DNA of 64,000 nt from NCBI RefSeq assembly GCF_036321535.1, contig NC_087451.1, positions 42,718,001 to 42,782,000 of the forward strand, read 5' to 3'. A program made the position numbers and the translations under genes. Shown piece by piece: positions 3,861 through 61,791 of the stretch. This DNA is from Camelus dromedarius (lineage: Eukaryota). The notes under the pieces are model-generated. The model ran no database searches. It was not told the origin of the DNA and saw only the letters and a program-made list of their open reading frames with translations. Positions within the stretch are counted from its first letter, which is position 1. Each line of letters begins with the position of its first letter.

Positions 3861-6800
3861 TGGACCGACCTGTGAGGCCAAGGTTGGCTTCTCACAGTGA
3901 CTTTCAGTTTGGAGCTGTTGCCACAGAGACAATCGAAGACGCTCTGCTCCACTTGGCCCAGCAGAATGAACAGGCCGTGCAGGAGGCTGCGAGCCGGATG
4001 GGCAGCTTCAGGGAGACCCGGATCGTGGGTGGGGACACAGGCCAGGGAGCTGGGTTTATGGGAGACTGGGCATCTGTCTTTGAGGCGCCGACTTTGAGAT
4101 TCAGTGTACTTTACTCTTTCAAATAAGTTTCGTTAGTACCTACTGTATGCTAGGTGCTAGGGGTACAATGATGAGCAAGACTCGCCAGCACCCTACCCTT
4201 GATTTCAATACGTTATTCTTCCTGCTTCCTGGGATAGAAAGATGGAAGAAAATCTAGTCTCCACTTTCAAACCATGTATATAATCTTTGGAGGATATTAG
4301 GACAAATCTGCAAATGACTGGATACAAGTATAGTTATTTAAGTGACATACCAGATAAAATAAGCTTTTATGGGGATAGAAAGGAGTGAAGAGAGAGGTGG
4401 GGGTAGGATGAATTAAAGGAGTCCTCCAGGCATCGTGTTACTTGAGGTAGACCTTAAAGGAAGGATGACATTTTAGTTGAAGTTGGTAGGCAGGGACCGT
4501 GTTTCTACTAAAAGGGGATAACATGAGTCAAGCCATCAGAATAGAGACACTTCAGGTGAATGTGGATACCATGTCATCCAGGTTGGCTAGAGTATATGGC
4601 AGAGTAGTTGAAAGTACCAGAAAGGTAGTTTGGAGAAATTCCATGTGGAACTTTGAATGCCAGGATAATAGGAAAACAAGAAGGCATTGAAGGTTCTTCA
4701 TATGGGAGTGATATAGCTGTAACCTTTGCCTTAGAAAAAGTATTTTGGCTGGGGGAGGGTATAGCTCAAGNNNNNNNNNNNNNNNNNNNNNNNNNNNNNN
4801 NNNNNNNNNNNNNNNNNNNNNNNNNNNNNNNNNNNNNNNNNNNNNNNNNNNNNNNNNNNNNNNNNNNNNNNNNNNNNNNNNNNNNNNNNNNNNNNNNNNN
4901 NNNNNNNNNNNNNTTGGAGTAAAGAGAGATGGGAGATAGGAAGACCGATGGAGTCTTTGTCAGTAGTTCAGGTGATAGGGCAGAGAGAATGACATGGGAG
5001 GATGGATTCAAAACATTTCAGAAGTAAAATCTAGGGTTCTGCAATGCATGAATTTAAGAAGTGAAGAAGGCAAAGATGACTACCAAAGGTTGAGTCTAGG
5101 AATATATTGGCGCCATAAAGAGAAACAGAGACATACATTAAAAAAAATAAAACAGGAGGAAAAATGACTTGTTTGGGAAAGAAAATAGCTTTGGTTTTGG
5201 ATCTACTGAGTTTCGGGTGCTTGTAGAACATTAAGAGGAAGGTACGTTTCTAGCACGCTGTTTAAAAAGTAAATCAGAAGAGAGGTCAGAACTAGAGATA
5301 AGGGTTTGGGAGTTGTCTCCATCATGATACTGTTGAAACTGTGGCAGAGGATGAGCTCTTAGAGGGAGAGAAGAGAAACAGGTCAGGTACAGTTCCTTGG
5401 GAAACATTTTGTGTTCAGGAAAGCAGAGTAAGAAGAAGAGTCATGAAGGAAATAAATGGAATGGTTGGGGAGATAGGAACAGAACTTTAAAAGCCAAGAG
5501 GAGAGTTTCATGAAGATGATTGGCCAGCAGTTTCAGATGCTTCAGGGATATGAACAACAGGAATGAGGCTTACAAAAGTGCCATGATATTTAACAATTTT
5601 GATGTATTTTCTGACCTTTGAGACAATCATTTCAGCAAGTTGGGAAAAGTAGAAGCCAAACTGCAGAACATTAGGGAGTGACTGATGAAGTGGAAGCAGC
5701 GGATGTAAGCTAGGCTTTCAAGAAATTTAATAGATGGAAAGCTGGAGAGATAGAGCCCTAGCATAAGAGAATAGAGGAGAATCTTTTAGTTAATAGATCT
5801 GAATATATTTGTAAGTATAGGAGGTGGAGCCAACAGTAAGAGAGAAGTGTAACTCTCATCCATTCCACCTAACTCAAACGTTGGCAGTTTAAAATGGAAA
5901 ATAGAAATAATTGCCCAGATAATTCAGATCAAAAGCAAAATCAAACCAAACACACAAATGAAACAAAGAAACAAAACCTAAACTCCAGCAAACAATACTG
6001 GCTAATAACAAACAATTATGTGTTCTAGGATACTTTGCTTAATTGCTTAAAAACTCTTCTTCACTGGACACTGCTAGCATAACTTCAGCCTCTGTAACGA
6101 TAAGGTTTTGTACATATATCTACATGTAATGTGTGTCGAGTAGATTGTTAAACTGTCGGGTGCTTGCTTAAATTTTGCAGGTAGTTTTTTTCCCCAAGTC
6201 AAATTTTCTCTGAAGATACATGGTAATTCGGCTATATGTAATTCTTTGTGGATTAAAGCTTAAAGTTCCTAGTTCTGTAGGAGCTTTGAGAACTAACATT
6301 TATCCTTGTTTCCACCCCCTAATGATATTGCTAACTAAATAGAATTCTATCTGGGGCTGTTCTTTCAAAGAGAAACACAGGCAGCCTAAAATCTTGCCAA
6401 GGCATCTTACCCTTCCCACCTGACCAGTGATTTCCCCTCCCCTGCTGCCCAAGTTGGGCTCTGTTCCCTGATTTAAGGGATTTTTTTTCCAAACAAGCCA
6501 CTTCACAGTAATGAACTTGCTCCTGGGGAGAGGCTCAGCTACCATAGATTTACCAAACAAACTGGTGGTGGAGAGGTGGTGTCCAGCTGTAAGGTGAATC
6601 GTGTTTGTAAAGCAATGGGAGTTCTCCAGAGGGTGGTTACTAAGCAAACAGTGTTATAAAGACTATCGAAGTTCCAGGAGGGACCTTTCTGCTCCTGTCA
6701 ACAATCCACTGAAAACAGAATATAGGGGTTAGGGTTTTTATCCAACCAAAAATCTTCCTTGAAGCTGGGGGTTCCCAGCATGGTGTAGAGGCCAGCTAGA

Positions 6801-7776: not shown

Positions 7777-10700
7777 CACACACAGGCAGTTATTAAATAG
7801 CCTGAGGTTCTGTTCCCAAAGTATAATTAATTGCTGGACAGATGCCATCATTCATACAGGTCACCTTTTCTCCTCTTGGACCCAAGGACAGTTTACATAA
7901 GGTGCCTGAATTGCCAACATAGCTATCAGTATTAAAGGAAAACTATTACATTTATAAAGGATAAAATGTTTCCACATGACTATGCAATGTCTGTAAAGTA
8001 TCATTGACTCAACAAATATTTATTGTCTTCTATGGCCAGATGTTGCACTAGATGCCTTGGTTACAAGAGTAAAAATATTGTCTGTGCTCTCAAGGAATTT
8101 ATTATCTAACGAGAGAAGACAAAGGTGAATAACGTCAGAAAGTGCTCTGATCAGTATAAATACAGAGGGTTATGAATGTACCTCATGAGCCTTGGAGAAG
8201 CAAGGAAGTGTATGTAGAGAAAATGACTTCTTGAAGGGGAGATGGGTGAATCCTTAGGGAAGGGGGAGAAGAGGTAAGGAAAGCAGAGGGAACTGTGGGG
8301 GGAAGGGGAGGGAGATTCAGGTACAGGAAACAGCATGTGGGTTTGGGAACTGCAAGTAATTCTATAGGACAAGTGGAGGGTATAAGGGAGAGTTACCAAG
8401 AGAGAAGGCGAGATAAAGGCATGGGCTAGATTGTGAAGGGCTTTGTATACTATGCCAAGATGTATGACCTCTATTCTGACACTCTGTTCTCCCTTTCATT
8501 CTATGTTGGTTTCCTTTGCTCAGATAATCAGCAACGTTACAGTCCTGAATTTCCTCCAGGCTCTGGGGTATCTACACACCAAAGAAGAACTGCTGGAGTC
8601 AGAGCTTGATGTCTTGAAGTCCCTGAACTTCCAAATCAATCTGCCTACTCCCCTGGCATATGTGGAGATGCTTCTGGAGGTTTTAGGTACTTAATTAAGT
8701 GTGTCAGGCATATGGGTAGGAGTCTTCCATAGAAAACAATAAGAATGTGCCCAGGGATTTGAGGGCAGTGGGCAGAACCTGCCAACGAGGGACAGCAGGA
8801 AGCTGGCAATGACTGAGGAAAGTAGCTCCTTCTAGTATTTCTCAGGGAAAGAAACACAGGTCTCAGCACCTGGGTTTTATTTGGGCTCATTAAACAGTCT
8901 CTTATCACATGATCAAAGAGTTGATTTTATAGAGAGGCATAAGGGGTAACAAACAAATACGCTCTAATTGTATAAATACTGTAGATGGAGGTTTCTCTAC
9001 CTCTCCCTTTGTCCTTTAAAACTGACCTCCAGTGAAAGACATTTCTTACAGTAGAACATAGCAACCAGGAAGCACATTAGCAGCTCAACAGCTTTGTGTC
9101 ACATGACAACTGTGATTTTGATCAGAGATGCACATAATGCTCTTTACCATGCACATACTCCATTTAGGATACAATGGCTGTTTGGTTCCAGTCACACGGC
9201 TGCATGCAACCTGCCTGACCCTGCTCGACCTAGTGTATCTTCTCCATGAACCCGTATATGAGAGCTTGCTGAGGGCTTCAATTGAGAACTCCACACCCAG
9301 TCAGCTGCAAGGGTAAGGCAACTCCTTTAGTATAAGGTCTTTCCAGAAACAGGGAGTCAGGAACATACCAAAAGAACTTGGGGAATGGAATTTACCTAGC
9401 AAGGCACCCAGTCCACAGATAACCTGCATGAATTACCTAGTTCTAATTAACTTCCAATCTGTTGCTTGGATGCAGATGACTGAACCCAATCAGCAAAACC
9501 CTAAAGGCTTTTACTTTTAAATTTAAGTGACTTCAAGTAATTAACATCCTTTCTTTCCTAGTTCTTCTTTTATAGCTGCTTATAATTTGAGATTACTGAA
9601 CTGCTTTTATAGTCACTTAGGAAAAAAAGCCAGTCAACAAGGTTGCAACTTGGACAAAAGTATTTGATTTCTGTGAAGTCAGACTAGTAAAAAGCCTCAT
9701 GGTTACATTTATTAGGGAGACGGAACAACAAAAGGCTCATACACCATTCAGACAGGAGGCTCAAGTTTTAATCCCAGTTGAGTTGGGGGAGGTTGGGAGA
9801 GGGGGTCAATTAGTTATTACTTGACCATTTCCCTCCACATCTAAAAAAATCCACAATGATCAACATAAATAACTCAAAGTTGAAGTATCATGACTCTAGG
9901 ATTTAGATCAAGTTTCATTCTAGTTCCAAAATTAATATGGTTTTAATCACTCAGNNNNNNNNNNNNNNNNNNNNNNNNNNNNNNNNNNNNNNNNNNNNNN
10001 NNNNNNNNNNNNNNNNNNNNNNNNNNNNNNNNNNNNNNNNNNNNNNNNNNNNNNNNNNNNNNNNNNNNNNNNNNNNNNNNNNNNNNNNNNNNNNATAGAA
10101 AGCATTCTCCCATCAGTTAAAGGAAAACAGAAGACAAGTTATAAAAGTGCCAAGACCTAGGATTAGAACAAATGATTAGGATTTGGGAGTGAAAAAAACT
10201 AGGATAGGACTGGATAATGTTCTCCAGTTTTCCCCTTATGAAATTGGAAATGGAGGCCCAAGTTCAGCTTGTTCATTTCCCTTGATGATGATAATCTGCT
10301 AATGTTAAAAGTCCAGTAAGTATATCCTCCCAAATAGAGAAAATGTCAAGACCCAAATATCCCTCTCATATTTCATAAAACTTATCTCCAGCAGAGGGAA
10401 ACGTCTAGCAGAAACTTTCCATGCTGACACTATCAGGGCAAAGGTATCCTAGTGTAATCTGGCCATTGGCAAACACTGGGATCTGGATTTAATCTTCTCT
10501 GTAAATTCAGAGAAACAGAAAAATTTACATTTGGCTTGAGAGAACAGCCCCGGGGCTGTCTGTGTCTATTTGTACACTAACACATGTTTATTCAGTAATA
10601 AGAAATCTGTCTCTATTTCTGAAGGTTGTGGGGCATTTGCAGAGCATCACTGGCATTGCTGTGGAAAGCATTGCTGAGTTCTCTTACACAATCCTGACTC

Positions 10701-12038: not shown

Positions 12039-20823
<8,785 letters not shown>

Positions 20824-32400: not shown

Positions 32401-33922
32401 ACAAAGAATGACAGATGTGGGGCTGGAGGCATGGAGTGGATGTGGAAGTTGGCAGGCTAAGTATTTTGGCTCCTGTACCCGTGGCATCTGGCCCTAGCAG
32501 CATGAATTGTATACTTCGTGGCTTCAGCAGAAAAGGCCATGGTCCTCATATATATATATATATTGGTCCCCTCATCCTCCAGGTCAAAATGTGGGTACAG
32601 CTCCTGATTCCTAGGATAGAAGATGGGAACAACTTTGGGGTGTCCATTCAGGTAATGTGCCTGCATTAGAAACTGTGGAAGGTTTGGGAGATAATCTCAT
32701 CTCCCATGTTCTATTTTCCCTTTCTCTTTGGTCTGCTGTGCAATAACGTGAAAGTGACTTTTGACTTACTTGTTTTTTTCAGGAGGAGACAGTTGCAGAA
32801 CTAAGAACTGTTGAGAGTGAAGCTGCATCTTATCTGGACCAGATTTCTAGGTAGGGCTGTTGGGCCTGGCTCAGGAATTGGGGGCTGGTGAGGTGGTAAG
32901 CACTGCCAGGGGTCCCCTGCAGCTTCCTCCTCTTCTCTCTCCTTCCAGATATTATATTACAAGAGCCAAATTGGTTTCTAAAATAGCTAAATATCCCCAT
33001 GTGGTAAGTAAGGGTTTTGTGGCCTGAGGGTGGAAGTGGTAGGGCAGGGAGGAGTGACTGTTCCTGGGAAGAGCTGTGTGGGGACAGTCAGAACACGGGG
33101 ACGAGTCTTTTCTCTGCCCCTCCTCTCAGGAGGACTATCGCCGCACAGTGACAGAGATTGATGAGAAAGAATATATCAGCCTTCGGCTCATCATATCAGA
33201 GCTAAGGAATCAATATGTAAGTAACCTTGGTCCCTGCCTGCAGTTACTCTGGCTTCTCTTAGTTCTGGTAATCATTTTCTTGCCACTCTGTGGGTCGAGA
33301 CAGAGTGTGGTGGTAAAATGAGCGGAACAAATTCTGCCCATCAACTGAGTGTTGAGAACTATGAGATCATTGAAGGTACCTAGCCGGGTATCTCCTTTCT
33401 TTCTACCTGGATGGGGGGGAGTGCAGTACAGTATAGGGGTGAAGGTGTGGGTGTCAGACTTAGGTTTAGAACCAACTCTACCTGTAATGTGGCTTTGGGC
33501 AAGTTTAATCTCAAACTTCAGTTTCTTCATCTCTAAAATGGAACTTAAGAGTAGCACAAAGATTGGTTTTTAAAAATGAGTGAGATAACATATGAGGGGA
33601 CCCAGTGCAATTTTTTAATGTTAAGTGCTTAATAAATGTTAATTATTAGACACTTGGGTCTGGAAGATACCCAGGTGCACTCAGATTTGGGGTATAAGAG
33701 GCAGGAAGGCAGCCACCCTTAATTCAAGTTCAGGTGAATGAGATCAGGGTTATGTGGATAATTGCTTGGGGATTCATGGGGATGTCTCATTTCCCTAGCA
33801 AGGTAGGGGTAGAACAGATGTGTGATTCTCTGATCCTTNNNNNNNNNNNNNNNNNNNNNNNNNNNNNNNNNNNNNNNNNNNNNNNNNNNNNNNNNNNNNN
33901 NNNNNNNNNNNNNNNNNNNNNN
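29496..33922 (+). CDS. PSME3: Proteasome activator subunit 3 (PA28-gamma/REG-gamma), 254 aa predicted, 11 exons
   Basis: Exons 29496-29537, 30244-30276, 30400-30462, 30658-30762, 31638-31686, 32235-32347, 32583-32651, 32783-32850, 32949-33003 and 33130-33216 give 228 codons (MASLLKVDQEVKLK..., NLS KKRRLD, activation loop IPRIEDGNNFGV). The last exon is not visible and should lie in the N-gap 33839-34132, so the end coordinate is approximate. Confidence 0.95.
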
Positions 33923-34574
33923 NNNNNNNNNNNNNNNNNNNNNNNNNNNNNNNNNNNNNNNNNNNNNNNNNNNNNNNNNNNNNNNNNNNNNNNNNNNNNN
34001 NNNNNNNNNNNNNNNNNNNNNNNNNNNNNNNNNNNNNNNNNNNNNNNNNNNNNNNNNNNNNNNNNNNNNNNNNNNNNNNNNNNNNNNNNNNNNNNNNNNN
34101 NNNNNNNNNNNNNNNNNNNNNNNNNNNNNNNNCCTCCCCTAACACCCCACGCCCCACCTGCCCTAATTTCTGGAAAACTCCAGGTTTGTGTGTGCAGGAT
34201 GTTGGCACAAGAATACTTGTGTTTTCTCTCCTGCCTCCCTCCTGTGTCTTGGGCTTTGTGTTTTCTTCCTTTTGGTGATTAGTTGGTTAGAAGCTGAGGG
34301 AACTGGAGGGAAAGTACTAGATGTTTTGTAGGAACTGGAGCGGGGTTGGGGGGGACCAGCTCCTCTCTTCTTCATGAAAGTTTAGTGTCTCTTGCACTGT
34401 GGGACATTGGATCCTTCCTGCCACAGTTGCCCTGGTGGTCGCTTAGGGTTCCCCATCTACATACGTTCCACCTTGACCCTGATCATGACAAGAAACACCT
34501 TAGACCTTTGGCCAAGTCTCTAGCTCCTTCAGAAGTTTTTATAATGCATTTTCACATACACATATATGTGTCTA

Positions 34575-42842: not shown

Positions 42843-45800
42843 ATGAACCAGAAGACCACCCTGGTGCTCCTCGCTCTGGCTATCATCACTATCTTTGCCT
42901 TGGTGTGTGTCTTGCTAGCTGGCAGAGGAGGAGATGGGGGTGAATCCAGCCTGCCTGCCTTCTGCCCCTCCGTATCTCCCAGTGCCCAGCCCTGGACACA
43001 CCGTGGCCATAGCCAGCTGTTTGCAGACCTGAGCCGAGAAGAGCTGGCAGCTGTGATGAGATTTCTGACCCAGAAGCTGGGGCCAGGACTGGTGGACGCA
43101 GCCCAGGCCCAACCCTCAGACAACTGTGTCTTCTCAATAGAGCTGCAGCTGCCCCCCAAGGCTGCAGCCTTGGCCCACCTGGACAAGGGGAGACCCCCGC
43201 CTGCCCGGGAGGCACTGGCCATCGTCTTCTTTGGTAGACAGCTCCATCCCAACGTGACTGAGCTGGTGGTGGGACCACTGCCCCACCCCTCTTACATGCG
43301 GGATGTGACTGTGCAGCGTAATGGGGGACCCCTGCCCTATCACCGACGCCCTGTGCTCACCCGAGAGTACTTGGACATAGACCACATGATCTTCAACAGA
43401 GAGCTGCCCCAGGCTGCTGGGCTCCTCCATCACTGCTGCTCCTACAAACGCCAAGGACAGAACCTGGTGACAATGACCACAGCCCCTCGTGGTTTACAGT
43501 CAGGGGACCGGGCCACCTGGTTTGGCCTCTACTACAATATCTCAGGGGCTGGGTATTACCTCAATCCTGTGGGGTTGGAACTACTGGTAGACCACAAGGC
43601 TCTGGACCCCACCGGCTGGACCATCCAGAAAGTGTTCTTTCAAGGCCGCTACTATGAGAGTCTGGCCCAGCTGGAGGAAGAGTTTGAGGCTGGCCGGGTG
43701 AATGTGGTGGTGGTCCCAGACAATGGCACAGGTGCATCCTGGTCCCTGAAATCCCCGGTGCCCCGGGGTCTGTCTCCCCCTCTGCAGTTCCATCCCCAGG
43801 GTCCCCGCTTCATTGTCCAGGGGAGTCGAGTGGCCTCCTCATTGTGGACTTTCTCTTTTGGCCTTGGAGCTTTCACTGGCCCAAGGATCTTTGACATCCG
43901 CTTCCAGGGAGAACGTTTAGCTTACGAGATCAGCCTCCAGGAGGCCTTGGCCGTCTACGGTGGAAATACCCCAGCAGCAATGATGACCCGCTATATGGAC
44001 GGCAGCTTTGGCATGGGCAAGTACTCCACACCTCTGACCCGTGGGGTGGACTGCCCCTATCTGGCCACCTACGTGGACTGGCACTTCCTTCTGGAGTCCC
44101 AAGCCCCCAAGACACTACACGATGCCTTCTGTGTGTTTGAGCAGAACCAGGGCCTCCCACTGAGGCGACACCACTCATATTTTCACTCCCACTATTTTGG
44201 GGGCCTTCAGGAGACTGTGCTGATCATCAGATCTGTGTCCACCTTGCTCAATTATGACTACGTGTGGGATATGGTCTTCCATCCCAGTGGGGCCATAGAA
44301 GTCAAATTCCATGCCACGGGCTACATCAGCTCAGCGTTCCTCTTTGGTGCTGCCCGAAGATTCGGAAACCAGGTTGGGGAGCACACGCTGGGCACCATCC
44401 ACACCCACAGTGCCAACTTCAAGGTGGATCTGGATGTGGGAGGTAAGACATCCTGGCGGAGGCAAGGATTCAGAAGAGGAGCCTAAAGAGTTGTCTGCAT
44501 TTGCTTTGAGTTTTATGGAGGTTTTCCAGGAAAGGAAGATCTGAGCCTGAGTGGTTTTGGAATTTCATGCTTCCTCTTTTGCTAGATGGGAGAGAGCTGG
44601 CTGCTGAATGTCACTGAGAGGTTAACTCACTGGCTGGGTGCAGCCCTGCCACCCTCTCTCCACTTGATTTCATCCGAAAATCTTGGGCAATAGCTCAGCT
44701 CAGGCAGGATCTGGGCTAAGGGTCCCTATTGCCCTCTTCCTTCCCTGGCACTTATATGGGCTTCATTTTAGCGAGGCAGACATTTGTTTTTTGGCTCATC
44801 TGTGTCTGGCCTGCAGTGCTGGTGTTTTGGAAGATCTGTTTGCTTTCTGCCGAGTCCCTGGCACATGTAGGCTAATCAGGGAATATCCCAGATTGTACGT
44901 TTCCTTGGAAGGTGTTCCCTCCTCTTCCCTGAGTTTCCCTCTGGGCACAATACATTTAAGTGTGAGGGGTAGAGTGACTGCTGTGGAACATTCTGGGTAG
45001 TTCCTGGAGTTGGTGGTCACATAGAGAGCCAAGGCTACATGATGTCTTAGAGGCCTTGTCATTTTTCACTGTCCTTCCCCACATTGAGTTAATCACCAGA
45101 TTTTTTTCTGTTCTGCCTCTGAAATATCCCAAACTGCTCGCTAGACCCCACTGCCATCCCTCTGTTGAGCCAGTCCTCTCTTTGCCATTTTGACTATTCT
45201 TCCTCTCAGATTCAGGGCTCACTCTGCACCCAGAGGGACCTACCAGCCCATGCCAGCATGCTCCCTCACACACCTCCCACGTTCCCCATCACCTATGGGA
45301 CCCTGTCCGCAGAGGGACCTACGAAGCCCTTCCCCTCAGAGTGCAGCTCCTGCCTGCCTTTCATATTCTCCCCCAGGGCTGCATTAGCTGCACACACACC
45401 CTGCCTGGCCCTGGACACACACAGCGCCCAGGCCAGTCGGGCTGTTTTTCTTTTGCTCATGTTTTGGCCCTGCCTAGAATGCCCTGCCGTGTCATCTCTG
45501 CTGATGACATCCCCTGAGGACAGGCTGAAGCGTTGCCCAGGAAGGCCCCCACTCCTGCCTGCACCTGTGTTCCTCTAACCTTGAATCGTGAGCGTGCTCT
45601 TCTGGCATTGCAGGCCCCTCAGGGCTTTGCTCCTCTGTGGCTTCAGTGGGAGCAGGAGGGTAAGAATAAAGTTTCATTCACCTGTATGTCCCCCGCGCCG
45701 AGCACAGGCCTCTCCACTAATGGGTGTGAACGGATGAATGAATGAAATCCTTGAAGACATATTTCACAGGTCAACAGCTTTGGCTGAAAGATGGGGGATA

Positions 45801-55472: not shown

Positions 55473-58400
55473 ATGACCCTCTTCATTCTTTTGTGTAGTG
55501 TTCTGGTGATGGCCATGGGTGAAGGTGGTGCTGGGAGTAAGGAAGGAGTAGGGAAGGAATGTAAACCCAGCTGCCCCTCCGTATCTCCCAGTGCCCAGCA
55601 ATGGACACACCATGGCCAGAGCCAGCTGTTTGCAGACCTGAGCCGAGAAGAGCTGGCAGCTGTGATGAGCTTTCTGGCCCAGAAGCTGGGGCCAGACCTG
55701 GTGGACGCAGCCCAGGCCCAACCCTCGGACAACTGTGTCTTCTCAATAGAGCTGCAGCTGCCCCCCAAGGCTGCAGCCTTGGCCCACCTGGACAAGGGGA
55801 GACCCCCGCCTGCCCGGGAGGCACTGGCCATCGTCTTCTTTGGTAGACAGCTCCATCCCAACGTGACTGAGCTGGTGGTGGGACCACTGCCCCACCCCTC
55901 TTACATGCGGGATGTGACTGTGCAGCGTAATGGGGGACCCCTGCCCTATCACCGACGCCCTGTGCCCATCCGAGAGTACTTGGACATAGACCACATGATC
56001 TTCAACAGAGAGCTGCCCCAGGCTGCTGGGCTTCTCCATCACTGCTGCTCCTACAAACGCCAAGAAAAGAACCTGGTGACAATGAACTCAGCCCCCCGTG
56101 GTTTGCAGTCAGGGGACCGGGCCACCTGGTTTGGCCTCTACTACAACATCTCAGGGGCTGGGTATTACCTGAACCCCTTGGGGTTGGAACTACTGGTAGA
56201 CCACAAGGCTCTGGACCCCACCGGCTGGACCATCCAGAAAGTGTTCTTTCAAGGCCGCTACTATGAGAGTCTGGCCCAGCTGGAGGAAGAGTTTGAGGCT
56301 GGCCGGGTGAATGTGGTGGTGGTCCCAGACAATGGCACAGGTGCATCCTGGTCCCTGAAATCCCCAGTGCCCCCGGGTCTGGCTCCCCCTCTGCAGTTCC
56401 ATCCCCAGGGTCCCCGCTTCATTGTCCAGGGGAGTCGAGTGGCCTCCTCATTGTGGACTTTCTCCTTTGGCCTTGGAGTTTTCACTGGCCCAAGGATCTT
56501 TGACATCCGCTTCCGAAGGGAGAGAGTGGCCTATGAGGTCAGCCTCCAGGAGGCCTTGGCCGTCTACGGTGGAAATTCTCCTTCTGCTCTGAGAGGCCGG
56601 TATGCGGACAGCAACTTTGGCTTGGGCTACTTCTCCACACCTCTGACCCGTGGGGTGGACTGCCCCTATCTGGCCACCTATGTGGACTGGCACTTCCTTT
56701 TGGAGTCCCAAGCCCCCAAGACACTACACGATGCCTTCTGTGTGTTTGAGCAGAACCAGGGCCTCCCACTGAGGCGACACCACTCAGATGAGACCGCCTA
56801 CTATTTTGGGGGCCTTGCAGAGACAGTGCTGGTTATCAGATCTGTGTCCACCATGCTCAACTATGACTATATATGCGATTTGGTCTTCCACCCCAATGGG
56901 GCCATAGAAGTCAAAGTCCATGCCACGGGCTATATTGGTTCATCGTTCCTCTTTGGTGCTGCCCGAAGATTCGGAAACCAGGTTGGGGAGCACACGCTGG
57001 GCACCGTCCATACTCACAGTGTCAACTTCAAGGTGGATCTTGATGTGGGAGGTAAGACATCCTGGCGGAGGCAAGGATTCCAGTAGAGGAGGATGAAGTC
57101 TTCATGCCTAGCTTTAAAAATTGTCATTGAAACCTTAAAAATGTACAAGTATATGAAGTAAATGTGAAAGTCATCGAATTCCTTCGAGATTTTCACCCTT
57201 AGATGTCTGTTCTCTCATGCTTAAGAAAATTCTTCCGTCTTTTAAAACAGTGCGTCTGCAATTCTAGAGTATATTATGGTGTTTACTATGTACAAGATAG
57301 GCTATACTGATAGGCATATTTAGATTTTTACTATCAAATTTCAACCATACTGTACACATATATTGTCACTTCTGTTTTCTTGCATAACAACATATCACAC
57401 TCATGCAAGCAAGGAATATTTACTGAATGCATATTTGTGCCGAGCACTGCGCTTAAACAATTTAACAAAAGAAACAACGTCCCTGCTCTCAGGAGGTTTA
57501 CATTCTAATGGAGATGCAGAGAGAGCATGGAGAACTCCCAGAAAATGTGTGTGATAGAAATATTTTTACACTTAACCTCTTTGTGTCTCAGCTTAACTCA
57601 AGTATAAAAATGGTATAGGCAGCGCATTCCTCATAAGATTGTTGTAAAGATTAATGGTGACTATTTTAAAACCTTTTGTCTTTTGAAATAACTTTAGACT
57701 TAGAGAAAAGCTGCAGAGATTATACAGAATTCCCATAAACCCTTCACCATCTCCCCCTCATTTTAACGTCTCACATAACCATAGGATAATCAAAAGCAGG
57801 GAATTAATATTATTATCATACTATAAACCATAGACCTTAGGAGAATTTCATCAGTGCTTCTACTAATTTTCTTTTAGAAGATATTGGTCAATCATTTTGT
57901 AGGGTGTCTTTCAATTTGGGTTTCTCTAATATTTTCTCATAATTAGATTGAGCTTGTGTTTTTGTTTTTGTGGTTTTTTTTTTTTTTTGGCAAGAAAACC
58001 GCAGAAATGATGTATCTCCTCCCTAGAGCATCATATCAAGGGTACATGATGTCCATATGTTGTCTTATCAGTGATGTTGACCTCAAGCAGTTGTTTAACG
58101 TAGTGTTTTCCAGCTTCCTTCGTCGTAAAAGTTAGTATGTTTCCATTTGCAATTAACAAATATTTGGGGGAAATTTTTGATGCTGTGCAAATATACTATT
58201 TATTTTCTTCTCAAATTTCTTTTTTAAAATTTTTTTAAAATTTATTTTTAATGGAGGTGCTGGGGAATTGAACCCAGGACTTCGTGCATGCTAATTGAGC
58301 ATTCTACCACTGAGCTATACCCTCCACCCCTCTTCTCAAATTCTTCCCTGCTAATTTTAGCATCTATTGGTGGATTTTTCGATGCAACAATTATTGTTGC

Positions 58401-60512
58401 TGTTTCCCTCCTAGTCATTTAAATGTTTTCCCTTATTCTTTATACATTAATAATTGGAATTCTCCATAAGAAAGTCTTATCTCTCCTTTTCCCTCTATGT
58501 AATATATGTAATCATTTATTCATTACTGTATAAATTCATGGATATTTTATTCTAAGGGTTAAAACCCAGTACTATTGTTTATTTTGTTCCTTAAATTGTT
58601 CCAGTTTTGGCCATTGGGAGATCCTTCAGGTTGATTTCTGTGTCCTTCTGACATGCCGCCATCCTTTTTTAAGCATTTCTTTACTTTCTGGCACCATAAG
58701 ATGTTCTAAATCCATCTGGTATTTTCTCTGCTCCAGCCCTGGAATCAACCACTTCTCCAAGAATCTCTGGCTCCTTTATTGGAGAATAGTATGTAGAAGC
58801 CAAGATCTGGGTACCAGGTGTGCTCATTATTACTGGGATGTTGCTTTTAGGCTCTTATTGGACTTAGAAAATATATGTATGTATTAGAACTAACACAACA
58901 TGTCCCTCTTTATCTCTACATCTAAGCGATGGCAACTTTTCAAACACTTGGAACTGCGCCTGACACACACTGAGAAATATTAGCTATTGTTGTTGCTGTT
59001 ATTATCCACATGAGCCTACTAGTGTGGATATATCAGAATGAGAACTCTTTCCCTTTAATTGTCCTCTACAAGTAGGCACTGTAGAGTGTGGACTAGGAGC
59101 AGTAATCCACAAAAGGAAACTGAGGGTTTGCTCAAACAGTCTCTGCTCTCTTTGATCCTTGGAAGGTATGGAGGGAGCTTCCAGCATGTTTTGGTTTACT
59201 GCTCTTTGGTCTCAGATCACTTAAGTTGCCTCATAATATGGAACCTAGTTGGACTCTAATAAAATCATTCAAAATTCCAAATATTCAGGCAACAGACTGT
59301 GCCTTTGGCCTTCCTCTTAATTCCTTTCCAAACCCCAAACAATAGAAAACACCTGTAAGCTCCAGCAATGTTGGGCCCAGGGTCTGCCTTTCCTTCCTTC
59401 TAGCCTGCGTGTCTGCTGTCCATGTGTGATGGGACCACTTTATGTTGGTCTTCTCTGGGTCCTGTAGAGCCAGACCAAGACCTGGGTCCCCAGCCCTGTC
59501 ATGAAACTAACCAAGTGCCCTTGGTGACAAACCAGGGCACATTATTTAAATTCCCTAATTCTCAGTTATCCCATCTGTAAAATGGGAACAACTACAGTTC
59601 CTCCTTCATAAGATAGTTGTGCAAGTAGAGCATCACTACATGTAAAGTACTCAGCACCCTGCCTTGCAGAGCTTTTTCAAGTTCAACAATTGTGAGCTAC
59701 CACTGTTATTATTTACATGATAAGGCAGTCTGGTGATGCCATAAGGCTTCAGATGTGAGGTGCAGACCCTTTCCTCAGGTCAGAAAGAAACTGACTCTGC
59801 ACATTGCCTGCTCAACTGATCCAACCTCAGGTAAACCATTCTCCCTTTAGCTCCTCAGAGGGACAAGGTCACTGGAAGCCCAGTCACAAGACATCTGGGA
59901 TGATTACTGGATATGATATCCGGGGGAAGACTTTCTCCAAACTCTGGATCTGGGGTATCTTGACAAGAGGGGAAGGAAGCAAGGGGCACACTCAGTCTGG
60001 ACTTCTCTTTGGCCCCTCCTCAGAAGCCAGGTCGGGGCAGAGTCTAGAGGGGGTAGGGCCACCGTATGACCAGCCCTCCCTCCCACCCTTCCCCTTCACC
60101 CACCTCCACCCAACCCTTGCAGGAGTGGAGAACTGGGTCTGGGCTGAAGACACGGCTTTTGTCCCCACGGCGATACCCTGGAGTCCTGAGCACCAGATAC
60201 AGAGGCTGCAGGTGACCCGGAAGTTGCTGGAGACGGAAGACCAGGCTGCCTTCCCCCTGGGAACTGCCCTGCCTCGCTACGTGTACCTGGCCAGCAACCA
60301 CAGCAACAAGTGGGGCCACCCTCGGGGCTACCGCATCCAGGTGGTCAGCTTTCCTGGGGAGCCGCTGCCCCAGGCCAGCTCCATGGAGAGAGCCTTCAGC
60401 TGGGCGAGGTGGGTGGTGGGGTGCCAGAGAGGCACTGGGGGAGGCAGATTGTACAAGAAGCTCCATGTTGCTGGGAACCCAGGTTCCCCCACCTCCCGTG
60501 GGTGTGCATGCA

Positions 60513-60580
<68 letters not shown>

Positions 60581-61791
60581 CCCTGCAGCCACAATCTTAG
60601 GCCACTCAAAATGAATCCTACTGGTTGGATGGATGAATGGAGAGATATGTGCTGAATCAGATACAACAAAATGTTCCAGGTAGAATCTAGGATGTGAGCA
60701 TGTGGGTGTTTACTATTCTTTCAACTCTTCTCTATGTTTAAAATGTTTGCAATCAAGGTTGGAAGGGAAACAAAGAAGAAGAGAGGAGCACAGATCTGAG
60801 GGGGTGTCCCCTAAAATCCAAGCACATAAGATACTGAAATTGACCTAAGATGGGAATCAGGCTGTGTCTGGGCATATGCATCCATCTGGATGGACACATG
60901 AGCGACAGTCCCATCTGAAGTCTGAACAGCGGGCCAGTAGATGTTTGAGATACAGGATATTGAAGAAATGCAGGAACTTTAAGAGAGAAAGAACGGGAAG
61001 TGGACAAAGAATAATAAAGAGGTTTGATACCCTGAGACCTCTGTGCTCATTTCCCCTTCATGTCCCCACCCTAGTGCAGCTTCAGGCAGCGGGACGGGTC
61101 GATTGAACTTGGGGATCTAATCCAAATCCCCTGCAGGTACCAGCTGGCTGTGACCCAGCGGAAGGAGGAGGAGCCCAGCAGCATCAGCATCTACAATTTG
61201 AATGACCCCTGGACCCCGACCTTGGACTTCACGGACTTCATCAACAATGAGACCATCGCTGGGCAGGTGAGTCGAGAGGGAGGAGGTGGGGGTCAGAGGC
61301 GGACGAGGGGGAACAAGGACGAGCCACCTCATTCTCTCCTAATCCAGAGTCCTCCAGGGGGTCTTTGGAGCCCACCAAGGAAGAAAGCATTATAATTTCA
61401 CATTTTTCCTGGTCTGGTGAACTGAATCGTTCCACACAAGGCCACTGCGAAGGAGGGGGCAGGCATGTCCTTAGCAAAGCCAGGCTTCAAAATCCTCTTT
61501 CTTCACCCCTGCTAGGACCTGGTGGCCTGGGTGACAACCGGTTTCCTGCACATCCCACATGCAGAGGACGTTCCCAATACGGTGACTGTAGGGAACGGAG
61601 TGGGCTTCTTCCTCCGGCCCTACAACTTCTTTGACCAGGACCCCTCCTTTGACTCTGCTGACTCCATCTACTTCCGGGCAGACCAGGATCCTAGGGCTTG
61701 TGAGGTCAACCCCATGGCTTGCCTCCCCAAGTATGCAGCCTGTGCCCCGGACCTCCCTGCCTTCTCCCACGGGGGCTTCTCTTACAACTAG
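55473..61791 (+). CDS. AOC4: Secreted copper amine oxidase, AOC4/serum (plasma) amine oxidase type, 756 aa, 4 exons, intact ORF
   Basis: Exons 55473-57051, 60123-60408, 61137-61266 and 61516-61791, with no stops or frameshifts. Signal-peptide-like [16 protein letters not shown] followed by [14 protein letters not shown] (resembles bovine serum amine oxidase EEGGVGSEEGVGKQC), [17 protein letters not shown] (TPQ Tyr at 56862), Asp at 56607, HTH and FLHIPH. Located downstream of AOC3. Confidence 0.88.
57660..58900 (-). mobile_element. Old L1 fragment(s) in AOC4 intron 1
   Basis: T-rich L1M-like antisense segments (TTTTGAAATAACTTTAGACTTAGAGAAAAGCTGCA..., CCAGCCCTGGAATCAACCACTTCTCCAAG). Family assigned by recall. 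Confidence 0.5.
58218..58330 (-). mobile_element. tRNA-derived SINE (camelid-type) nested in L1
   Basis: Family consensus in reverse, with a perfect 12-bp TSD TCTTCTCAAATT (58206-58217 / 58331-58342). Confidence 0.9.
60513..60579 (+). repeat. Long (CA)n microsatellite in AOC4 intron 2
   Basis: Uninterrupted CA run of more than 30 units. Confidence 0.95.

Follow-up and report, generated by a model that had tools for sequence, protein, structure and literature searches.

Two old camelid-specific patches in the dromedary AOC4 amine oxidase, probably a functional enzyme

The gene studied here, AOC4, encodes a secreted-type copper amine oxidase (CuAO) and lies in a 64,000-nucleotide window of the Camelus dromedarius genome (contig NC_087451.1). 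Coordinates are positions in this window and residue numbers are those of the window AOC4 unless marked as human. The human VAP-1 numbering is the window numbering plus 7, which was checked on PDB alignments of bovine serum amine oxidase (BSAO) and VAP-1. The gene very probably encodes a functional AOC4 that carries two old camelid-specific patches, one at the tip of Arm I and one on the strand with the topaquinone (TPQ) cofactor. Taken as a whole, we lean slightly towards a functional AOC4 with canonical chemistry, in which patches acquired on the camelid stem alter the mouth of the substrate channel and the core behind the O2/copper site. That the patches change the amine or O2 kinetics is one component of this reading, and we would place it just short of an even call.

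Residues were compared in an alignment of the three AOC paralogues of the window with 120 database homologues. The first patch is Glu440-Thr441-Ala442-Tyr443 at the tip of Arm I (56790..56801, + strand; human 447-450), with Glu440 encoded at 56790-56792. The first-pass annotation, made from the letters of the DNA, had reported the string HHSDETAYY with a glutamate at the 447-equivalent. The string is present, the numbering is right and the residue is lineage-specific, since an acidic residue at human position 447 was found in none of the 117 other AOC2, AOC3 and AOC4 sequences. In the DNA, 7 of 10 consecutive bases are altered in this patch, and every alteration is non-synonymous. The serine at human position 449, which is Ala442 in the camelids, is kept in 114 of the 115 other mammalian sequences; the arm-tip positions 447 and 448 vary among species. 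Camelid-only residues were also collected at conserved sites, where the residue had to be common to the camelids and present in no more than one further sequence, and the site had to show a conservation of 90% or higher in the rest. Three such residues were obtained. One belongs to the signal peptide; the other two, Ala442 and Cys468, belong to the mature protein.

Crystal structures of human VAP-1 show Leu447 and Tyr448, which the partner subunit contributes through Arm I, in stacking or hydrogen-bonding contact with imidazole, pyridazinone and further ligands, and Leu447/Phe differences account for species-specific inhibitor potency (PMC7144023). Since positions 447 and 448 touch the ligands of VAP-1, the replacement of the Leu-Tyr pair by Glu-Thr should alter the channel mouth, and a changed amine selectivity from the camelid arm tip is plausible. 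In the mechanism that we propose, the Arm I hairpin would reach the partner subunit and form part of the wall of its substrate channel. The change from hydrophobic/His-Ser-His to Glu-Thr-Ala-Tyr would place a carboxylate where Leu447 and Tyr448 of VAP-1 stack on ligands. The selectivity might then be altered, most simply by a better binding of cationic di- and polyamines and a poorer binding of hydrophobic aromatic amines. A micro-conversion from another locus was considered as the origin of the arm-tip patch and was ruled out, as a search of the window that allowed 3 mismatches and one of the genome that allowed 2 both failed to find a second copy.

An unusual arm tip was also seen in the AOC3 of the camel. 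Its position 446 (44178-44180, exon 1) is Tyr (TAT), where the other AOC3 and AOC4 sequences have mostly Asp and in a few cases Asn, Ala or Glu. Tyr446 adjoins the ligand-contacting Leu447, and the public dromedary AOC3 isoform P0003 agrees with this residue. Both camel paralogues thus have odd arm tips, at adjacent positions.

The second patch is on the TPQ strand, where Ile467-Cys468-Asp469-Leu470 (56871..56882, + strand) stands at human Val474, Trp475, Asp476 and Met477. It comprises 4 base changes in 10 bases, all in codons with a changed amino acid. Cys468 is encoded by TGC at 56874-56876, and the earlier statement that this codon marks a lineage-specific Trp-to-Cys change beside the TPQ motif was borne out. 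The human-475 position is Trp in 114 of the 115 other sequences and in both the AOC2 and the AOC3 of the window, and is Cys in the camelids. Cys468 is the sole extra cysteine of the mature protein; since the conserved cysteines are all kept, it has no new disulphide partner. To our knowledge, no vertebrate-type CuAO with a cysteine four residues after TPQ (TPQ+4) has been characterised. Our literature searches on the tryptophan at position 475, 474 or 465 of copper amine oxidases returned nothing relevant, and the TPQ+4 residue is absent from the xenon-site table of ECAO.

Other mammals have Tyr, Tyr, Trp, Met and Phe at TPQ, +2, +4, +6 and +8, respectively, which form a hydrophobic face. In HPAO-1, Tyr407 (TPQ+2), Leu425 on the paired strand and Met634 form a putative O2 pocket (PMC3382800). 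When the hairpin register of HPAO-1 is carried over, Cys468 would pair with Val482 (56916..56918, + strand; human Phe489), its likely cross-strand partner in the TPQ hairpin according to the Tyr407/Leu425 pocket. The changes Trp to Cys (TPQ+4), Met to Leu (TPQ+6) and Phe to Val (paired strand) would then be neighbours on the inward face, on the same hydrophobic side as TPQ and the tyrosine at TPQ+2. Two of these three replacements sharply cut the side-chain volume. Cys468 is therefore probably buried in the second shell at the back of the O2/copper site, outside the amine channel. The hairpin core behind the O2/copper pocket would be repacked with smaller residues, which may affect the O2 kinetics or the biogenesis of TPQ, and Cys468 would be a buried unpaired thiol.

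The first-pass annotation had proposed a free cysteine near the cofactor and a redox regulation of the enzyme, that is, that Cys468 is an accessible thiol close to TPQ which either serves as a redox switch or reacts with the quinone. It is indeed an unpaired extra cysteine only four residues from TPQ in the sequence. On a beta strand, however, the TPQ+4 residue would be about 13 Å along the backbone from TPQ, as judged from geometry. The alternation of Tyr, Tyr, Trp, Met and Phe suggests that this inward hydrophobic face belongs to a buried core and neither to the channel nor to the surface, and no partner cysteine has appeared. The proposal was not supported, and we regard an accessible thiol as improbable.

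The TPQ+4 position was then compared over the whole family. Among 114 diverse CuAO representatives it is Phe in 35, Ile in 22, Trp in 18, Val in 12, Tyr in 10, Leu in 9 and Cys in 1. The position is hydrophobic yet tolerant family-wide, which argues against a loss of activity by the camelid replacement. The lone other cysteine at TPQ+4 was observed in P0174, a protein of 616 residues that is about 40% identical to the camel AOC4 and has the same N-Y-D-Y-I-C-D string.

The codons AGA, GAG ACC GCC, ATA TGC and TTG recur unchanged in one assembly of the alpaca and two of Camelus ferus. The patches thus predate the split of Camelini and Lamini and are not assembly errors. An origin of the variants as assembly or sequencing artefacts, for which we see practically no room, is refuted by these independent assemblies and by an older C. 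ferus protein record. In addition, 0.91 of the words of this stretch were present in many DNA runs from several studies.

Between camel and alpaca, codons 434-491 differ by one synonymous change and by no amino acid. The ratio of non-synonymous to synonymous substitution rates (dN/dS) of this species pair was 0.24 over the full length of the gene and 0.13 over codons 341-756, and the binomial test against neutrality gave p = 1e-5 and 1e-4, respectively. AOC4 is under purifying selection since the split of camel and alpaca. These values bear on the possibility that the gene is decaying, with the loss of the tryptophan beside the cofactor motif impairing TPQ formation and leaving an inactive or non-catalytic protein. 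Such a decay would agree with the near-invariance of Trp475 in mammalian AOC2, AOC3 and AOC4 and with the loss of AOC4 in humans and rodents (PMC3382800). Against it stand the dN/dS of the catalytic half, the reading frame and splice sites, which are intact in three species, and the catalytic residues, copper ligands and disulphide cysteines, which are all kept. Moreover, the whole mature protein has only two substitutions at highly conserved sites, many diverse CuAOs have Leu, Ile or Val at TPQ+4, and AOC4-specific words occur in liver cDNA libraries, as described below. We consider a decaying gene very improbable.

The overall rate of change was estimated for codons 341-756 with the donkey as outgroup. 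There were 30 camel-unique and 26 yak-unique replacements, so camelid AOC4 shows no general acceleration and the change is local. Eight of the 24 camelid-only residues fall into the 43-residue span 440-482, and this clustering was matched in 61 of 20000 trials of a scan-statistic permutation. Among yak, donkey, hare and dugong, the per-site ratio of non-synonymous to synonymous differences (pN/pS) for codons 434-491 was 0.07-0.20, the most constrained segment of AOC4, whereas it was 0.30-0.45 in every pair that included the camel. The camel pairs had about ten extra replacements in this segment without a synonymous excess, and the rest of the catalytic part showed no such contrast. For the pig, the AOC4 DNA was exon 1 only, taken from a low-coverage metagenome contig. 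These data would fit a burst of replacements on the camelid stem, in the otherwise most constrained stretch of the enzyme, that has been frozen since.

The patches might also have been fixed neutrally, by one or two complex multi-nucleotide mutations and drift in a small ancestral camelid population, with the enzyme remaining an essentially ordinary AOC4. The tight packing of 7 changes in 10 bases and of 4 in 10 bases is what single events would produce, positions 447 and 448 of the arm tip are variable, TPQ+4 accepts small hydrophobic residues across the family, and the pN/pS stays under 1. Neutral fixation does not sit easily with the 99% conservation of Ser449 and Trp475 in the 115 other mammalian sequences, with the constraint on the segment elsewhere, or with the preservation of the new state, which differs by no amino acid among camel, C. 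ferus and alpaca. It would also have to account for two separate clusters in one functional hairpin region, where the scan permutation applies. We regard it as a serious though clearly less likely explanation than a functional AOC4 with stem patches that alter the channel mouth and the core.

The expression of AOC4 was followed by the word content of public libraries. Three cDNA libraries of one study, labelled liver or mammal metagenome and 70-127 million letters in size, contained 0.82-0.87 of the sampled 31-mers of the region 56480-57051, and only 22% of these 31-mers are shared with AOC3. Words of intron 1 were found at 0.28 in one of the three libraries and were not listed for the other two, and at 0.97-0.99 in genomic DNA runs. 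Genomic DNA in a library of this size would be too sparse to cover a single-copy locus of a 2.3-Gb genome, so the result points to an abundant liver transcript, and AOC4 is apparently liver-expressed. This is what one would expect of AOC4, which in cattle is expressed in the liver and secreted (PMC12914920). The camel-milk whey proteome (PMC8909633) quantifies two amine oxidases, UniProt S9XJ18 and S9Z0L8 (C. ferus). One of them may be the AOC4 product; they could not be mapped to AOC4.

Several points weigh against an altered channel mouth and core. With 7 changes packed into 10 bases, the arm tip resembles the product of one complex mutational event, which could have been fixed without adaptive value, and the pN/pS of codons 434-491 is below 1. 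Val at the Phe489 position is absent in six AOC4/AOC3 comparators, but was found in 21 other hits including AOC2. The placement of Cys468, Leu470 and Val482 follows from strand periodicity and the hairpin register of HPAO-1 and not from coordinates. The RNA evidence comes from one study and consists of word content, with the RNA nature of the runs guessed. No enzymatic, cofactor or plasma activity data on camelid AOC4 were found in the literature searched. The structural placement and all of the functional consequences are inferred. A bolder version would have the three hairpin changes (Trp to Cys, Phe to Val and Met to Leu) open a new thiol-bearing cavity beside the off-metal O2 pocket and give distinct O2 kinetics or H2O2 handling, or a cysteine-modified or cysteine-gated cofactor environment that no characterised copper amine oxidase has shown. 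Together with an acidic arm tip retuned to polyamines, this would be an adaptive plasma amine clearance in foregut-fermenting camelids, and we think it unlikely.

The gene lies in a cluster of three copper amine oxidase paralogues, all on the + strand, with large first exons at about 36.9 kb (AOC2-like), 42.7 kb (AOC3-like) and 55.5 kb (AOC4). AOC4 is thus directly downstream of AOC2 and AOC3, and the AOC3-like paralogue has its membrane anchor. The AOC4 model has four exons and 756 amino acids, is intact and has GT-AG boundaries at all introns. Exon 1 (55473..57051) covers codons 1-526 and one base, ends at a GT donor and encodes the N2 and N3 domains and the first half of the catalytic domain; the open reading frame 55473..57086 carries all three peptides quoted in the first-pass annotation. 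Exon 2 (60123..60408) was placed by its AG/GT boundaries and the frame, and exon 3 (61137..61266) and exon 4 (61516..61791) by their splice boundaries and the frame. Exon 4 encodes His677, the third of the copper ligands, and closes the reading frame with TAG. After splicing, the product matches the public dromedary protein P0271 ('primary amine oxidase, liver isozyme-like') at every residue, so our gene model and the existing annotation are in agreement. The Pfam domains PF02727, PF02728 and PF01179 (N2, N3 and catalytic CuAO domains) all exceeded their curated cut-offs, and the nearest PDB relatives of the product are BSAO and VAP-1, with 1tu5 as the top match (E = 2e-291). Only four CuAO loci were found in the dromedary genome, the AOC2/AOC3/AOC4 cluster and AOC1 on another contig; AOC4 is therefore single-copy in the dromedary, unlike in the bovids.

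At the N-terminus, a cleavable signal peptide of about 16 residues is predicted (55473..55520, + strand), which would replace the type II membrane anchor of AOC3. The N-terminus aligns with secreted-type AOC4, and its residue 17 falls on residue 3 of mature BSAO (chain 1tu5); the cleavage site is putative. Asn205 (AAC, 56085..56087, + strand) is at the equivalent of human Thr212, where Asn is a marker of the soluble plasma oxidase (SAO/AOC4) subfamily (PMC7144023). The camel AOC4 has Asn at this position, AOC3 has Thr and AOC2 has His. The cofactor motif N-Y-D-Y was aligned to 56859..56870 (+ strand), with Tyr464 at 56862-56864 as the TPQ precursor, and the CuAO motif T/S-X-X-N-Y-D/E-Y is satisfied by S-T-M-L-N-Y-D-Y. 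The catalytic Asp379 (56607-56609), the copper ligands His513 and His515 (57009..57017, + strand) and His677 (61549-61551, exon 4) are all present, which confirms the earlier statement that the catalytic aspartate, the N-Y-D motif and the three copper histidines are intact. On our reading, the dromedary AOC4 would be a primary amine oxidase of the BSAO kind that depends on TPQ and copper, is made in the liver and is secreted. Its chemistry would be canonical, with Tyr464 converted to TPQ, Asp379 acting as the base and His513, His515 and His677 holding the copper.

Three side observations were made on the locus. Intron 2 of AOC4 contains a (CA)33 microsatellite at 60514-60579, about 100 bases downstream of exon 2. 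The RGD motif of VAP-1 reads R-A-D in camelid AOC4 (codon 720, exon 4); mammals differ at the middle residue (E, G, K and others), so the change is probably of no importance. Upstream of the AOC cluster, the window has five runs of N, at 4771-4913, 9955-10094, 12079-12210, 12940-13103 and 33839-34132.

The segment around the catalytic Asp379 (codons 368-388; 56574..56636, + strand), which we call island 1, had been described as newly remodelled, with Arg381 (human numbering) as a new charge. The alignment contradicts this. Island 1 has Arg374, Gly375, Ala378, Leu384, Tyr386 and Phe387, and the pattern S-x-L-R-G/S-R-Y-x-D...F-G-L-G-H/Y-F is common to AOC4-type proteins of yak ('liver isozyme'), pig, horse/donkey, elephant, dugong, hare, tree shrew and tiger. 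Of the 26 non-camelid sequences with the SAO marker Asn212, 15 have Arg at human position 381 and 17 have Phe at 394, and the 21 residues of island 1 are almost identical in yak and pig. Island 1, including Arg381, is a general AOC4 signature without camelid specificity. It had seemed new because the crystallised bovine enzyme (1tu5) has the AOC3-like A-A-M-L-T-R-Y-M-D at this place. The annotation had itself named a wide occurrence of its residues in non-ruminant AOC4 as the result that would speak against it. Such an occurrence was found for island 1, in pig, horse, elephant and others, but not for the Glu-Thr-Ala-Tyr of the arm tip or for Cys468.

The bovids have at least two secreted-type paralogues (yak P0005, and bison P0017 or PDB 1tu5). 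One has the general AOC4 island 1 (RGRYAD...FGLGYF) and the BSAO type has the AOC3-like AAMLTRYMD. With its AOC3-like island, the crystallised BSAO is not representative of AOC4 around the catalytic aspartate. The yak protein P0005 also has a longer C-terminus, with 787 amino acids in total.

The first exons of camel AOC3 and AOC4 (42962-44481 and 55571-57091) are 93.7% identical, with 98 mismatches. These cluster at 56515-56632 and 56787-56943, and only two mismatches are found in the 154 bases between. The identity is 93.8% in exon 2, 83.6% in exon 3 and 86% in exon 4. Island 1 escapes this homogenisation, and the mosaic fits a gene conversion that would have spared specificity islands. In a tree of the N-terminal 300 residues, camel AOC4 grouped with camel AOC3 (support 100), and the same pattern was observed within hare, gundi, pig and bovids. 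In a tree of exons 3-4 it grouped, with weak support (SH-aLRT 86), with other AOC4-like sequences and apart from camel AOC3. The N-terminal grouping is due to concerted evolution. AOC3 and AOC4 have been described to differentiate 'in a species-specific manner' (PMC12058724). As AOC3/AOC4 conversion has occurred in nearly every lineage and codons 440, 441 and 467 have multi-nucleotide changes, branch-site dN/dS would be unreliable here. Multi-nucleotide codon changes are a known source of false positives in branch-site tests.

Camelid AOC4 is a natural experiment in which an acidic residue was gained at the channel mouth and a near-invariant tryptophan was lost behind the O2 site, both fixed before the split of camel and llama and conserved since. 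If the changes shift the amine or O2 kinetics, they would reveal second-shell determinants unexplored by mutagenesis and may bear on the handling of polyamines and dietary amines in camelids. If they do nothing, Trp475 would be shown to be dispensable. The significance is moderate and of specialist interest. Mammals differ widely in how abundant their plasma amine oxidases are and in the substrates that these accept, and BSAO and VAP-1 are used as surrogates of each other in drug screening.

The closest known system is BSAO with the other mammalian AOC4 enzymes (PDB 1tu5/2pnc). Shared with these are the locus after AOC2 and AOC3, the four exons, the signal peptide in place of the anchor, the Asn at the 212-equivalent, the TPQ motif, the catalytic aspartate and the three copper histidines. 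The arm tip is F/I-H/R-S-H in other AOC4 and E-T-A-Y in the camelids, which also have Cys for Trp at TPQ+4 and Leu for Met at TPQ+6. In island 1, where the camel residues are near-identical to those of yak and pig AOC4, the crystallised BSAO with its AAMLTRYMD is a poor template. Human VAP-1/AOC3 (PDB 2c10, 4btx, 2y73) is about 78% identical in exon 1 and has the same fold and catalytic residues. It is membrane-anchored and has Thr212, Thr381, Lys393, Tyr394, Leu447, Tyr448 and Trp475, whereas the corresponding residues of the camel AOC4 are Asn, Arg, Tyr, Phe, Glu, Thr and Cys, respectively. HPAO-1 of Hansenula polymorpha and the other non-vertebrate CuAOs are distant, with about 35-45% identity; I, V or L is found at TPQ+4 in 43 of the 114 representatives and Cys in one.

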